This document shows, in pieces, positions 29,896 to 39,970 of a DNA stretch of 64,000 nucleotides. The stretch lies in contig MU008165.1 in assembly GCA_010909165.1 (NCBI GenBank), positions 1,364,001 through 1,428,000 of the forward strand, given 5' to 3'. The stretch's first letter is position 1. Every line of letters begins with the position of its first letter. The translations under genes and the position numbers were made by a program. A model generated the notes under the pieces. The model saw only the letters and a list, made by a program, of their open reading frames with translations, did no database searches and was not told where the DNA came from. This DNA comes from Anthoceros angustus. Lineage: Eukaryota > Plantae > Anthocerotophyta.

Positions 29896-29968
29896 TGTTT
29901 GTTAGCTCAGTCGGTAGAGTGCAAGGCTTTTAACCTTGTGGTCGGGGGTTGGAACCCCTTCAACCCCC
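29896..29968 (+). tRNA. tRNA-Lys(UUU)-like sequence, probably a pseudogene
   Basis: TAGCTCAGTCGGTAGAGT D-arm/A-box and a perfect CAAGG-CTTTTAA-CCTTG anticodon arm. The T-loop reads TTGGAAC and the acceptor stem does not pair. Confidence 0.6.
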
Positions 29969-32739: not shown

Positions 32740-33410
32740 GTGTCAAGCCTGTGTCTTGAGGCTGGTCTCAACTGCCAAGGATTACCACAGCCCCAGAAAG
32801 GGGTTGGTCTCCTTGTGGCTTCTTCGGGCAAGGGGTGACTTACCACTTCTTGCGGCTGGTCTCCACTGCCAAGGATTACCACAGCCCCAGAATGGGGTTG
32901 GTCTCCATGTGGCTTTCTTGGGCAAGGGGTGTCGACGCGGTGTGCGGTTGGCAGCGAGCACAGGAATGCGGCATCTTCAACAATGGTGGTAGATAGACCC
33001 TTTCATATTCCGAGATGCGGCATCGTCACCATTGTTAGATAGACCCTTTCATATTCGGAGATGCGGCATCTTCAAGACCCGGAGGAGGTTGATGCGGCAT
33101 GGGAGGTAGATGCGGCATCTTCAACACCAGTGGGAGGTAGGCCCTTTCATATCCCGGACCACGACCCTTTCATATCGGACCTTCACCCTTTCATATCCCG
33201 ACCACCACCCTTTCATATCCCGACCACGACCCTTCCACATCCCGGACCCTTCCTATCTCTTTTCTTCAAGATAGTCTCCACGTTCCGTAAGCTTTCGCAC
33301 CGAGGGAATCCACTCCCTCTAGGCACCCCATCTAAGTCACTCGGATGCTTAACAACTATGTTCTTATAAATGTTAAATGTTGGTCTATTTGGCCTAAGCC
33401 ATTTGGACAG
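32740..33410. mobile_element. Repeat-rich, probably non-autonomous element; its right end is dispersed-repeat copy B (minus strand)
   Basis: Direct repeat ctgccaaggattaccacagccccagaa..ggggttggtctcc x2, gatgcggcat x5 and ccctttcatat x6. The reverse complement of 33285-33410 matches 43345-43480. Confidence 0.5.
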
Positions 33411-33841
33411 ACATCCAGTCTCGTTCACACGTGGATCCGGATATTATCCATCACTCTGCCCTTCCCGCCTCGCCCGGTTGGCGGGAATGAGTAGCCCGAG
33501 CGGGTGCGCCCAACCTCTGGCATCTGCAATTGCGCAATTTGGAATCCACTTTTGGCCGCGAAGCTGTGGGTCGGATCGATCGGCTCTGGGGTTGGCGCCT
33601 TCGCGTGTGCTCCGTTGCGCAGCGTTTTTTTTTTCGTTTCTGACGTAGCAGGAAGGAGCAAGAACCAAGCACCATGCTGGGATTGAGATTGGGATTTGGG
33701 GATTTGCCGGCATCCCCGGGGAAGGGGGCGGGATGCTGGTGCTGTGGTGTGGTGGGATTGTTGGCGCATTTCTGATCTCAAGGCTCATTGGGAAATGGGT
33801 GAGGGAGGCAGACTTTGTTTTTTTGTGCTGTGCCGTTCCGG

Positions 33842-35213
33842 GATGATGACATTTGGGGCAGTGGTGTGACTGACAACTCGGCGTTTGGCCCCTGCAATTC
33901 AGCTGATGCGGAGTTGCAAGACCTGTTTGACGATGTCGATACTCTGTATGAGGATCTTTACCAAGATGTTGGCGGGGGAAGGCAGGTGCTGCGGACATCC
34001 ATTCAGGAGGTGATCAATGCGTGGGATGGGGTTTGTGATCTATCGTGTGCTGCGCTCCTGTGGGTGGAGGGTGACGGATTCTTTGCTGTTTTCTCAGATG
34101 GAAGATAGGCTGGATAAACTCACTAAGCGGGATAAGGAGATGGAAGCAAGCATGACGGAGTTGCAACGGCAGGTAGGAGATAAAAGTTTGGCGACAATTC
34201 GGGTGGAAGTTTCTTCTGTGACTGTTGGAAACCACACTGGGACCTTTTTTTCTATTGTTTAACCTGCATGCTGGGTTTGTCAGAATGCGACATTGCAACA
34301 AGAGAAGCAAACGCTCATTCGAAACATCTCTTGTCTCTTCAAGGTATGCCATGGTTTTATTGTTACGCCGGATGCCATGACTGGTTCGAGTGTTCGAGTG
34401 AATTCCAGCAGGGCGTGATGAGAGCGTGTGCTTCCCGTTTTTAGGATCAATGTAAGATTTTTGGCAAAGGGAACAATGGGGTGTGTAAGGACCGGAATGC
34501 AATGTGTGAAGAGACCAGTGGTGAACTGTGTTGCTTGCCGCAGACCGCCCAACTAGAGATAGCAAGGAAAGACAGGAACATCAAGGAACTGCGGGAAGAG
34601 TAGGTTTCCTTCTCTGCGAAGAGTTGTGTATTTCTGAATGCAGACTTGGAGTGCCGTTGGGCTCATTGGGTGCTGTCCGTCTGATGCTGTCAGGAACATG
34701 AGACTTCAGGAGTCTGTAGGGTCTCAGCCATGTGCCACAAACTGTGCTGTCGGGGTTCGAGCTCGTCAGCAAGCTAAACGTGCCGGAAGGGAACCCAGTA
34801 TTACAGGTTCAGGCAATGACATGCATCCCTTGAAAGATACGGATGGTGAGAGGAACCTGGAGAATGGGCGTGCCTCTAAACAGCTCTCTCCCAGTAGGAT
34901 TCAAAAGGGGGTCAGAGTTCGATTTGAAGACGTGCGGTATGACCATATTCCAAGTAGATATCAGGAGCCTGCCAGACAGAGACCTGGAGACGGAAAGAAG
35001 GAATACCCTTCTACACGCAGCCATGAGAACGGCAGAGACGGTAGCATCTCACTACGAGATCAGCACTCTAGGAGAGACCTGGTGGATGAAAATGGGTCCA
35101 GGAAGACGAGGAAAGTCGACCATGACGCTAAAGAAATTGCGACAGATGGATCCAGACCTTCACCTAGGAGGAGAACATCTTATCCTCAACATACACGTCA
35201 CCATGAGCGGTGA
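33842..35213 (+). CDS. Unannotated spliced coiled-coil protein with a FLASH/CASP8AP2 N-terminal-domain-like region; true start codon uncertain
   Basis: Five exons (..34009, 34098-34172, 34284-34343, 34544-34599, 34694-35213) join in frame through GT-AG introns of phases 0,0,0,2, giving ..EDLYQDV..ELQRQ|NATLQQEKQTLIRNISCLFK|TAQLEIARKDRNIKELRE. Confidence 0.75.
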
Positions 35214-35504
35214 TAATTACCTTCACATCCACATCCACTTGATAAGGCACGCGCGGAGTCCCCTACCGGTCAGTCTCCCCATAGTGCCCTTTCGTCATCT
35301 ACGTTACAGTGCAAGCCGTCAGACATTTTTGGCATGCACACAAAGAGGGTTCCATACACACCGCACTGCTGCAAAGAATTTTTGAATCAGGTTTGAATAA
35401 ACCACGACCAAAACTATTAAAAAACTGGTCCTCAGCGAACACAAAGCTAGGCAAGAGTGCAAGCTTAAATCAATCTAGGCCGAAACTTTTATCCCTGGAC
35501 TGGC

Positions 35505-36387
35505 CTAAGCCTTCTCCTTCTTCAGCTTTGACAACTCTCGCCGAACAATGGAGGACCTCTGCAGAAGAAACCACTACAGGCATAAGTCACCGTACCACGA
35601 CTGAGTTACCCCAAGATCTCAGGCTCCGAGTCCATGCACGAAAAACTCACCTTAACACGGGCCACCATCACCTTGTAACGATCAAAGTCGTTCAAGGAAG
35701 CCCGTTGCTTCCTGACGAGAAGCTTTCGTCCCCAAGAGCTAGTTTCCCATTTCCTCGCAACCTCTGTCGATCACACCGAAAAAAATGGACACGGTCAGAC
35801 GGCATTATCGCTTTTTCAACAAAGCCACATAAAGCATAAAAATGAACCCTGAAAAAAAAGCCACCCTACCTTCTGTCTCAATGGCCTTCTTCAGCTCTTT
35901 CTTGTTAGGGTTCCGGGGGATCTCAATTTTGATGTCTGTCAAAGACAACCTCTTGAAATTTATCTGAGTCCTCACAATTTCCGGTGAATCGATCAAAGCC
36001 TGCAGAAAACACAGTCGATGCGAGGATTTCAGCTCACCCCGTGAAACAGGTTGGTCACAACTTCGCGGTCATTGGCATTCAGCTCAGGCTGCATGGAGAT
36101 GTCAGATAAGGCTGCTGTACATACCCGGTTTTGGTCGACCACGTCCACAATGACAACGAGCTTCCCATACTGAGGCCCGTAATTGACGAGGGCCACCCTC
36201 CCAATCTCAACATACCGTCTGAAAGGCTGGAAGCACAACCGCACGCACAGTGATCAACCGTCGCGAAATTCCTCAGATGCGAGCTCACGGCCCCAAGCTT
36301 CCAGCTGCAATCGGATTATCGTGCAAACCTAACGAGCTCGAGAACAGGCATAGACTACGCTGCATCATTAGTGCAAGGACTCACCAT
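35505..36387 (-). CDS. RPL14: 60S ribosomal protein L14
   Basis: ATG-only first exon, then [34 protein letters not shown]|[17 protein letters not shown]|..[20 protein letters not shown]|[17 protein letters not shown]. Confidence 0.97.
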
Positions 36388-36483
36388 GGCGGCAGGCGGA
36401 AGCTCACGCAGGAGCACAACGCAGATATCCGGTCGAAAAAGAACGAGTGTCGGAGCCTGCACCCTTTAAGAGTTAGGGCTCAT

Positions 36484-37834: not shown

Positions 37835-39970
37835 CTAGACGACCTCCTTCTCCAGTCTCAACACAGCCATGAAGGCATCTTGAGGGACTTCAACCCTTCC
37901 CAGAGATTTCATCCTCTTCTTGCCCTCTGCCTGCTTCTTCAACAGCTTCTTTTTCCTAGTTATATCACCACCATAGCACTTCGCCAAAACATCCTTACGC
38001 ATAGCTGCGATGGCCTCGCTTGCGATGACTTTGGTACCTATGCAAGCTTGGATAGGGATTTTGAACAGCTGTCGAGGAATGAGTTCCTTCAGTTTCTGAG
38101 TCAAGGCTCTGCCCACGTTGTAGGCCTTGTCCTTGTGGACGATGCAGGCCAAAGGGTCCACAATCTCGGCGTTGATGAGGATATCCAGTCTCACCAAGTC
38201 GCTCTCACGGTACCCGATCAGTGAGTACTCCATGCTGGCATAGCCTTTGGACCTGGACTTTAGCTGATCAAAGAAATCTCCCACCATCTCAGCCAGCGGC
38301 AGGTCATAAGTGATGGAGGCCCTGTTCTCCGTCACGTACTTCATCTCTTTGAAAACACCTCGCCTGTCCTGAGCAAGTTCCATGAGAGGACCGATGTACT
38401 CCTTTGGTGTGATCATGTCGATCTTGATGTAGGGTTCCTCAAGCGCCTTTCGCTTTGTGGAATCCGGCAGCATGGAAGGGTTGGAACATTCCGTCACCTC
38501 GCCGTCCGCCAACAAAACTCTGTACACAACACTCGGAGCTGTTGTGATAAGATTTAGGTTGTACTCCCTTTCCAGCCTCTCCTGGACGATCTCCATGTGC
38601 AGCAACCCAAGAAACCCACATCGGAAACCAAACCCCATGGCACTCGACGTTTCCGGCTCGAACTTGAGAGCAGCATCGTTCAGCTGCAGCTTCTCCAACG
38701 CCTCCCGCAATTCCGTGAACTGATCGGCGTCCACCGGGAACAGCCCGCAGAAGACCATGGGTGTCGCTTCTAGGTACCCCGGAAGCGCCTTCTCAGCCTT
38801 CCTGGCTGCGTTAGTGATGGTATCACCAACCCTCGCATCCGCCACTGACCTGATAGAAGCCGCCAGGTAACCCACCTCCCCCGCGTACAGCTCCTTCACC
38901 TGCAACTGCGTGGGAGACAAGACCCCAATCTCATCCACTTGATACTCCTTGCCACTGGCCATGAACTGCACCTTGTCACCTTGCTTCAGGCTGCCGTCAA
39001 CCAGCCTGAAATACACAATCACTCCTCTGTAAGCATCGTAGTAGCTGTCAAAAATGAGAGCCCTCAGAGGCAGCTGTGAGGTATCCTTGGGAGCCGGCAC
39101 CTTCTCCACAATAGCCTCCAGAATATCCTGTATCCCTATCCCTTCCTTGGCGGAGCACAGAATGGCATCCGTGCAATCCAGGCCCACAATGTCCTCAATT
39201 TCCTGCTGCACTCGCTCGGGATCAGCCCCCGGCAAATCAATCTTGTTCAGCACTGGAATAATCTCCAGGTTGTTCTCCATGGCCAGATACACATTGGCCA
39301 GAGTCTGAGCCTCCACCCCCTGCGAAGCATCCACCACTAGCAGAGCCCCCTCACAGGCTGCCAAGGACCGGGAAACCTCATACGAGAAATCCACGTGCCC
39401 GGGCGTGTCGATGAGGTTGAGGCAATAGGCGTGCCCATCCTTGGCTACGTACCGCATTCGAGCAGCCTGCAGCTTAATTGTGATGCCCCGCTCCCTCTCC
39501 AAATCCATGTTGTCCAGAAACTGCTCTTTCATGTCCCGATCCGACACTGTCCCGGTACTCTGCAGAAGCTTGTCCGCCAAAGTGGATTTACCGTGGTCTA
39601 TGTGGGCGATGATGGAGAAGTTCCTGATCCTGGAAATGGGCACCTTGGACAGCCGGTCCTTGCCAGCTTCGATGGCCTTCTGCTGCTGCTGCTGCCGTTC
39701 CTCTTGCACCACCTCCACAGCCTGCGCCCGGCACACAAGCTTAGAAGCCCGCCGCGGGCGGCGCAGCGCAGAAGAGCCCTGCTGCAGCCTTGCCCAGGGC
39801 GAGCTCCTCCTGGGGATGGGCAGGCTCCGGCTGACAGCCAAGGAAGTGCTGCAGGAGCTGGAGTCGCCCTCCAAGCCCCTGCCGCCAATCCTCCTAACGC
39901 CATCGCAGCTCAGGGCTCCTGCCATCACATCCCTCGTCGTCGCCCCGGTGAGGCTTCGGAGAGCCATCAC
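37835..39970 (-). CDS. cpLEPA: Plastid translation factor LepA/EF4 (GUF1-like), single exon, 711 aa with transit peptide
   Basis: [48 protein letters not shown] and the C-terminal [31 protein letters not shown]. Confidence 0.97.

Follow-up and report, generated by a model that had tools for sequence, protein, structure and literature searches.

A hornwort gene encoding a FLASH/CASP8AP2-like N-terminal domain in a 273-residue protein

An expressed six-exon gene of Anthoceros angustus, located on the + strand of the 64-kb window analysed here (the whole 64,000-nucleotide stretch of contig MU008165.1), encodes a protein whose N-terminus is identified by sequence comparison as a specific homologue of FLASH/CASP8AP2's N-terminal domain (NTD) and not a generic coiled coil. 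The resemblance runs continuously through the region that in human FLASH forms a dimer and binds Lsm11, and it includes the core of the motif that recruits the cleavage complex. By analogy with the animal proteins, we consider it rather probable that the gene is a minimal FLASH orthologue acting in a U7-type histone pre-mRNA pathway that this plant would have retained.

Gene structure, transcripts and neighbouring loci

The coding sequence extends from an ATG at 33795-33797 to a TGA at 35211-35213, and its product of 273 aa begins MADAELQDLF. An earlier note, made from the nucleotide sequence alone, had described five exons starting at 33842. When those exons are joined by script, introns of 88, 111, 200 and 94 nt, all GT..AG, are removed with the frame kept, and the peptide quoted in the note is recovered; YEDLYQDV occupies residues 17-24 of the protein, and residues 58-98 run from ELQRQNATLQQ to NIKEL. 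The exon count and the starting point had to be revised: the gene has six exons, and 33842 lies inside intron 1. The first exon of the five-exon model contains no in-frame ATG, those at 33844 and 33847 being out of frame. A short upstream exon, ATGG|GT, was predicted to join the acceptor TTCAG|CTGATG, and RNA contigs X1 and X2 bear this out; this 5'-most exon contributes only four coding nucleotides (ATGG).

Splice support was drawn from the contigs of four public runs (X1, X2, X4 and X12) aligned to 33400-35600. X1 matches the window at 100% identity and hence comes from the same species; the other runs represent two relatives at ~90-95% identity, organism B (X2 and X4) and organism C (X12). 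All five GT..AG introns, for whose junctions the earlier note had asked for RNA-seq, are seen in the spliced contigs of these runs, one from the same species and three from relatives. One 1216-nt X2 contig covers 33544-35359 in fully spliced form. That the runs are RNA-seq is our guess, judged from the intron-less contigs with GT..AG joints, the small assemblies and the three organisms; the only alternative source of intron-less contigs, a processed DNA copy, is unlikely. The features of the gene and its promoter region are as follows.

33462..33487, no strand: inverted pair of TTCCCGCC motifs, plant E2F-site-like; two of the 4 matches in 64 kb (1.2 expected), 10 bp apart
33592..33599, +: TTGGCGCC, the third of the E2F-like motifs, within the 5' leader; weak alone
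33544..33798, +: exon 1, 5' leader and ATGG, start context AAATGG; X2 contig 33544-33797 and X1 contig 33728-33797, both joined to exon 2
33799..33902, +: intron 1, 104 nt, GT..AG; joint 33798|33903 in X1 and X2 contigs
33903..34009, +: exon 2, residues 2-37, acidic N-terminus; script join and contigs
33938..33961, +: tandem D-T-L-Y / E-D-L-Y, residues 14-21, LDLY/LDIY counterpart by alignment to human FLASH
34010..34097, +: intron 2, 88 nt, GT..AG; joint 34009|34098 in each of the four runs
34098..34172, +: exon 3, residues 38-62, first half of the predicted coiled coil; contigs and PDB alignment
34173..34283, +: intron 3, 111 nt, GT..AG; joint 34172|34284 in X2, X4 and X12
34284..34343, +: exon 4, residues 63-82, with N63, L66, E69, an N-I-S triplet and L80-F81; human alignment
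34344..34543, +: intron 4, 200 nt, GT..AG; joint 34343|34544 in X2 and X4
34544..34599, +: exon 5, residues 83-101, with R90-K91-D92; the Lsm11-binding-like region ends here; human alignment
34600..34693, +: intron 5, 94 nt, GT..AG; joint 34599|34694 in X2, X4 and X12
34694..35213, +: exon 6, coding part, residues 101-273, basic Arg/Ser-rich tail, stop TGA at 35211-35213
35214..35430, +: 3' UTR, with AATAAA at 35396 and ATTAAA at 35416, converging on the RPL14e 3' end (- strand); end approximate, contigs running to 35359-35474

The relatives diverge by ~10% in the last exon, where 3-nt indels that keep the frame also occur at 34995 and 35191/35193. Across the four N-terminal coding exons the divergence is ~4% (12/299 letters), and the one substitution listed there, 33937 C>G, leaves the amino acid unchanged. 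We conclude that the gene is genuine, is expressed and evolves under coding constraint. No second copy of it was found within the 64-kb window.

Upstream of the gene, the inverted TTCCCGCC pair lies ~60-80 bp before the most upstream spliced-contig end. We take these motifs and TTGGCGCC to resemble plant E2F sites, and they hint at a candidate S-phase promoter element. The leader has two upstream ATGs, one at 33674 opening a 33-codon uORF that runs to 33775 and one at 33733 opening a 76-codon uORF (33733-34155, spliced) that overlaps the main start and stops in exon 3; both fall within the leader if the transcript begins at 33544 or further upstream, as the relatives' contigs show. The main ATG has the best context of the three (AAATGG), and translational control by the uORFs is possible. 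Directly upstream of the promoter region, 32754-33244 is occupied by tandem repeats with periods of 94, 46, 18 and 22 nt, which may derive from a mobile element that has decayed. One X4 contig of relative B, 1062 nt long and of high depth, covers 33419-33771, is not joined to exon 2 and has an upstream part unlike the window; in that relative, the upstream region could be organised differently, or an independent transcript could run across promoter and leader.

Several neighbouring loci can also be described. An RPL14e gene (35007-36400, - strand) converges on the FLASH-like gene, with PF01929 matched on its exon at 35805-35996 and its stop, read by eye, near 35507. High-depth contigs from the RPL14e exons reach down to 35007, and one relative's contig merges both genes; the 3' ends of the two genes therefore overlap or abut, and antisense transcripts possibly overlap the last ~200 nt of the FLASH-like coding sequence. 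Further along, 37835-39970 (- strand) holds a chloroplast LepA/GUF1 gene as one 711-codon ORF with its first ATG at the second codon; it seems to be intron-less because the ORF is uninterrupted, and the N-terminus of its product is transit-peptide-like. This protein shares 79-86% identity with proteins of land plants. A maximum-likelihood tree unites it (99/97) with one Logan protein and places it apart from all liverworts, mosses, lycophytes, ferns and seed plants in the sample, which makes a hornwort the likely source. That protein, its nearest relative at 81% identity, comes from run SRR33208241, on a 5.5 kb contig with called genes on both flanks, the one at the downstream end being partial; this contig does not extend far enough for a FLASH-like neighbour to be seen. 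An exact-sequence look-up did not find the LepA/GUF1 protein itself in a 15-billion-protein collection. Finally, we note a tRNA gene at 29896-29967 (+), the sole Rfam match in the window at the gathering threshold.

The N-terminal domain and the tail

What relates the N-terminus to FLASH? A phmmer search of the PDB with the spliced 108-aa N-terminus returned the human CASP8AP2/FLASH NTD structures 6ANO, 6AOZ and 6AP0 as its sole strong matches (E=4.6e-9, 40 bits), with query residues 15-100 (protein residues 16-101) aligned to chain residues 8-90 (human 57-139) across one 3-residue gap. The FLASH/CASP8AP2-like NTD proposed in the earlier note is thus borne out. The human sequence given in the same note agrees with the PDB chain apart from one letter (EIQAQN, not EIQTQN). 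Single exons are too short for such a search, the lone 20-aa exon 4 giving 0 matches in the PDB, and the spliced 108-aa N-terminus had only one word-sharing candidate among proteins of 59-189 aa in a word-indexed collection, which was not a match.

Coiled coils invite spurious matches, and the next entries in the PDB search were of this kind: Spc25, GCN4 fusions and designed bundles, with E of at least 2.7e-4 and up to E=10. One could accordingly read the protein as a generic coiled coil whose likeness to FLASH is compositional or convergent. We regard this as extremely improbable. The FLASH match is five orders of magnitude better than those matches, and the polar core residues and an R-K-D ion-pair triplet are kept in register. 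We further compared the plant sequence with the human stretch of the PDB chain, using shuffles in which each residue keeps its own heptad position. The local alignment score is 124 against 36 +/- 6.7 for the shuffles (z=13), and 0/3000 of them reach 124. Heptad composition alone does not explain the similarity, and the generic coiled-coil reading is largely refuted.

The residues that matter for the human FLASH dimer interface and for Lsm11 binding are known from a structural study (PMC5636114), and the alignment can be read against them. Identity rises to 23/45 (51%) over human residues 95-139, a span containing the Lsm11-binding region. The polar core is kept, human Q100/N101 corresponding to Q62/N63 and E107 to E69; likewise, human L104 is plant L66, the Lsm11-critical L118/I119 are L80/F81, and R128-K129-D130 are R90-K91-D92. 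At the positions of the named interface hydrophobics Y73, L76, Y80, C83 and F94, the plant protein has I, M, L, L and M, respectively. Thus, as judged from the aligned residues, the dimer-interface pattern of hydrophobic a/d positions together with polar Q100/N101, E107 and K129-D130 appears to be kept, with the exceptions of M87, which is Asp in the plant protein, and N108, which is Lys.

The motif that recruits the cleavage complex is LDLY in human FLASH (residues 55-58) and LDIY in the fly (PMC3884669, PMC5636114). Its plant counterpart is the tandem D-T-L-Y / E-D-L-Y at residues 14-21, in which the first Leu is missing. HMMER places L16-Y17-E18 on human L57-Y58-E59, and the register of the earlier note places D19-L20-Y21 on human D56-L57-Y58. 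The distance from the motif to the polar core is 42 residues in the plant (Y21 to N63) and 43 in human (Y58 to N101). The LDLY-like motif that the note had announced is therefore matched only in part, by its core and spacing.

The imperfect motif lends some colour to another reading, in which the domain is an NTD of the YARP/GON4L (Mute) type, or a regulatory paralogue, that binds Lsm11 without recruiting the cleavage complex and acts as a competitor or regulator. It adds to the case for this reading that a domain is common to FLASH and GON4L, so that a recent survey had to tell the two apart (preprint 10.64898/2026.10.14.759114). Against it, the DLY core is present at the right spacing along with the acidic N-terminal helix, Pfam finds no SANT or PAH domain in the plant protein, and no second copy accompanies the gene in the window. 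We judge the YARP-type reading to be very unlikely, and return to YARP itself below.

Beyond the NTD, the protein changes in character. The N-terminal 110 residues are acidic (pI 4.7), while the tail is basic and Arg/Ser-rich (pI 10.3) and is probably disordered. The 172-aa tail has no Pfam family, and no relative of it was found in a 5.8-billion word-indexed set or, by HMMER, in 1.84 billion representatives; it is lineage-specific. The Ars2-binding region and the C-terminal SANT-like/NPAT-binding domain of animal FLASH are absent, the protein ending at residue 273. With a tail that neither Pfam nor these searches connect to any other protein, and with the window containing just this one copy, the gene is an NTD-only 'mini-FLASH'.

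Histone pre-mRNA processing in land plants

In which setting might such a protein work? Histone mRNAs that lack poly(A) and carry canonical 3' stem-loops, together with SLBP, are found in green algae, in Physcomitrium, in a fern and in Cycas debaoensis, and SLBP was lost independently in Selaginella and the angiosperms (PMC13130582, 2026 Genome Biology). The earlier note had started from the premise that land plants lack the pathway; given these findings in a moss, a fern and a cycad, that premise fits only the angiosperms and Selaginella. The same study, in which no hornwort or liverwort was sampled, makes no mention of FLASH, Lsm11 or U7 snRNA/snRNP. According to a preprint of October 2026 (10.64898/2026.10.14.759114), land plants have LSM10 and LSM11, and FLASH occurs 'widely outside metazoans'. 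There, FLASH was called by PANTHER PTHR15489 and GON4L-like matches were removed, the domain being common to both; which plants have FLASH is not stated. Our literature search found no paper characterising a plant FLASH, and an Rfam search of the 64-kb window gave no U7 and no histone stem-loop.

We propose that the hornwort protein would work as follows. First, as in the human and fly proteins, two chains would pair through residues ~33-101 as a parallel coiled coil. Second, the C-terminal half of this coiled coil (residues 62-99, the counterpart of human 100-137) would hold one Lsm11 molecule of a U7-type snRNP by its N-terminal region. Third, the acidic N-terminal helix with its tandem DTLY/EDLY would recruit the cleavage module of CPSF73, CPSF100 and symplekin, which would then cut replication-dependent histone pre-mRNAs of the stem-loop type. 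Finally, the E2F-like promoter motifs may place the gene under S-phase control. We infer each of these elements, namely dimerisation, Lsm11 binding, cleavage-module recruitment, the histone substrate and S-phase control, from the animal proteins and from the motifs described above. Three substitutions speak against this proposal: the first Leu of LDLY is absent, N108 is replaced by Lys and M87 by Asp. Moreover, everything C-terminal to the NTD of animal FLASH is missing, which makes it harder to see how the protein would reach the histone genes.

Another reading is a true FLASH-NTD homologue that works without U7, either as a general adaptor bringing the cleavage module to other RNAs or with a part in transcription or the cell cycle. 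In its favour, the plant protein has none of the targeting domains found at the C-terminus of animal FLASH, its LDLY motif is altered, and animal FLASH is credited with functions beyond histone processing. An older role of this kind was what the earlier note expected a conserved plant homologue to imply. It is not favoured by the alignment, whose best-conserved part is the Lsm11-binding half (51% identity, with equivalents of L118/I119), a pattern hard to understand without an Lsm11-like partner; nor is it favoured by the reported occurrence of Lsm10/Lsm11 in land plants (preprint 10.64898/2026.10.14.759114). Retention of the pathway is the likelier reading because stem-loop histone mRNAs with SLBP are documented in land plants, LSM10/11 are reported there and FLASH outside animals, and the gene comes from a non-seed plant. 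We thus hold a U7-independent role to be unlikely. Its more specific form, a free-standing NTD that docks CPSF73-CPSF100-symplekin on targets other than stem-loops, we think improbable; if true, such a U7-independent adaptor would reveal the ancestral job of the NTD before it became tied to Lsm11 and U7.

If the gene is, as we prefer to see it, a minimal orthologue of FLASH serving a U7-type pathway that was retained, current views stand. Such a gene agrees with the picture now emerging of a pathway that is ancestral and was lost in angiosperms, and it indicates in addition that the FLASH NTD can exist as a stand-alone protein of 273 aa. The cleavage side of the pathway (the U7 snRNP, Lsm10/11 and FLASH) has been characterised experimentally in animals only. 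The gene offers a handle in a bryophyte-grade plant for Lsm11 binding assays, mutants and co-loss analysis, and it would allow a plant FLASH-Lsm11 docking platform to be tested and the plant U7 RNA to be sought.

Comparison with known systems

YARP/GON4L (Mute in the fly) has a FLASH-like NTD that binds Lsm11. Large in size and equipped with PAH and SANT domains, it is not known to have a functional LDLY motif. The plant protein differs in having neither PAH nor SANT by Pfam. Among plants, the stem-loop/SLBP pathway of green algae, moss, fern and Cycas debaoensis, which persists in non-angiosperm lineages (PMC13130582; preprint 10.64898/2026.10.14.759114), provides the setting into which a FLASH orthologue would fit.

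The closest counterpart is the human FLASH NTD (residues 51-137; 6ANO, 6AOZ and 6AP0), to which the plant protein is linked by a continuous alignment, the kept polar core, the L118/I119 equivalents and the R-K-D triplet. Common to both are the acidic N-terminal helix and a DLY core at a similar distance. They differ in the motif itself, LDLY in human and DTLY-EDLY in the plant, in the Cys at position 83, which the plant lacks, and in size, human FLASH having ~2,000 aa. Similarly, Drosophila FLASH carries LDIY at residues 71-74 and has its Lsm11-binding site within residues 1-178. The fly protein continues into an extended C-terminal region on which the histone locus body depends, and the plant tail is unrelated to it. 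In both flies and mammals, an N-terminal fragment of FLASH alone suffices for processing in vitro (PMC3884669), and a protein consisting of the NTD without the animal C-terminal domains is therefore plausible as a working unit.
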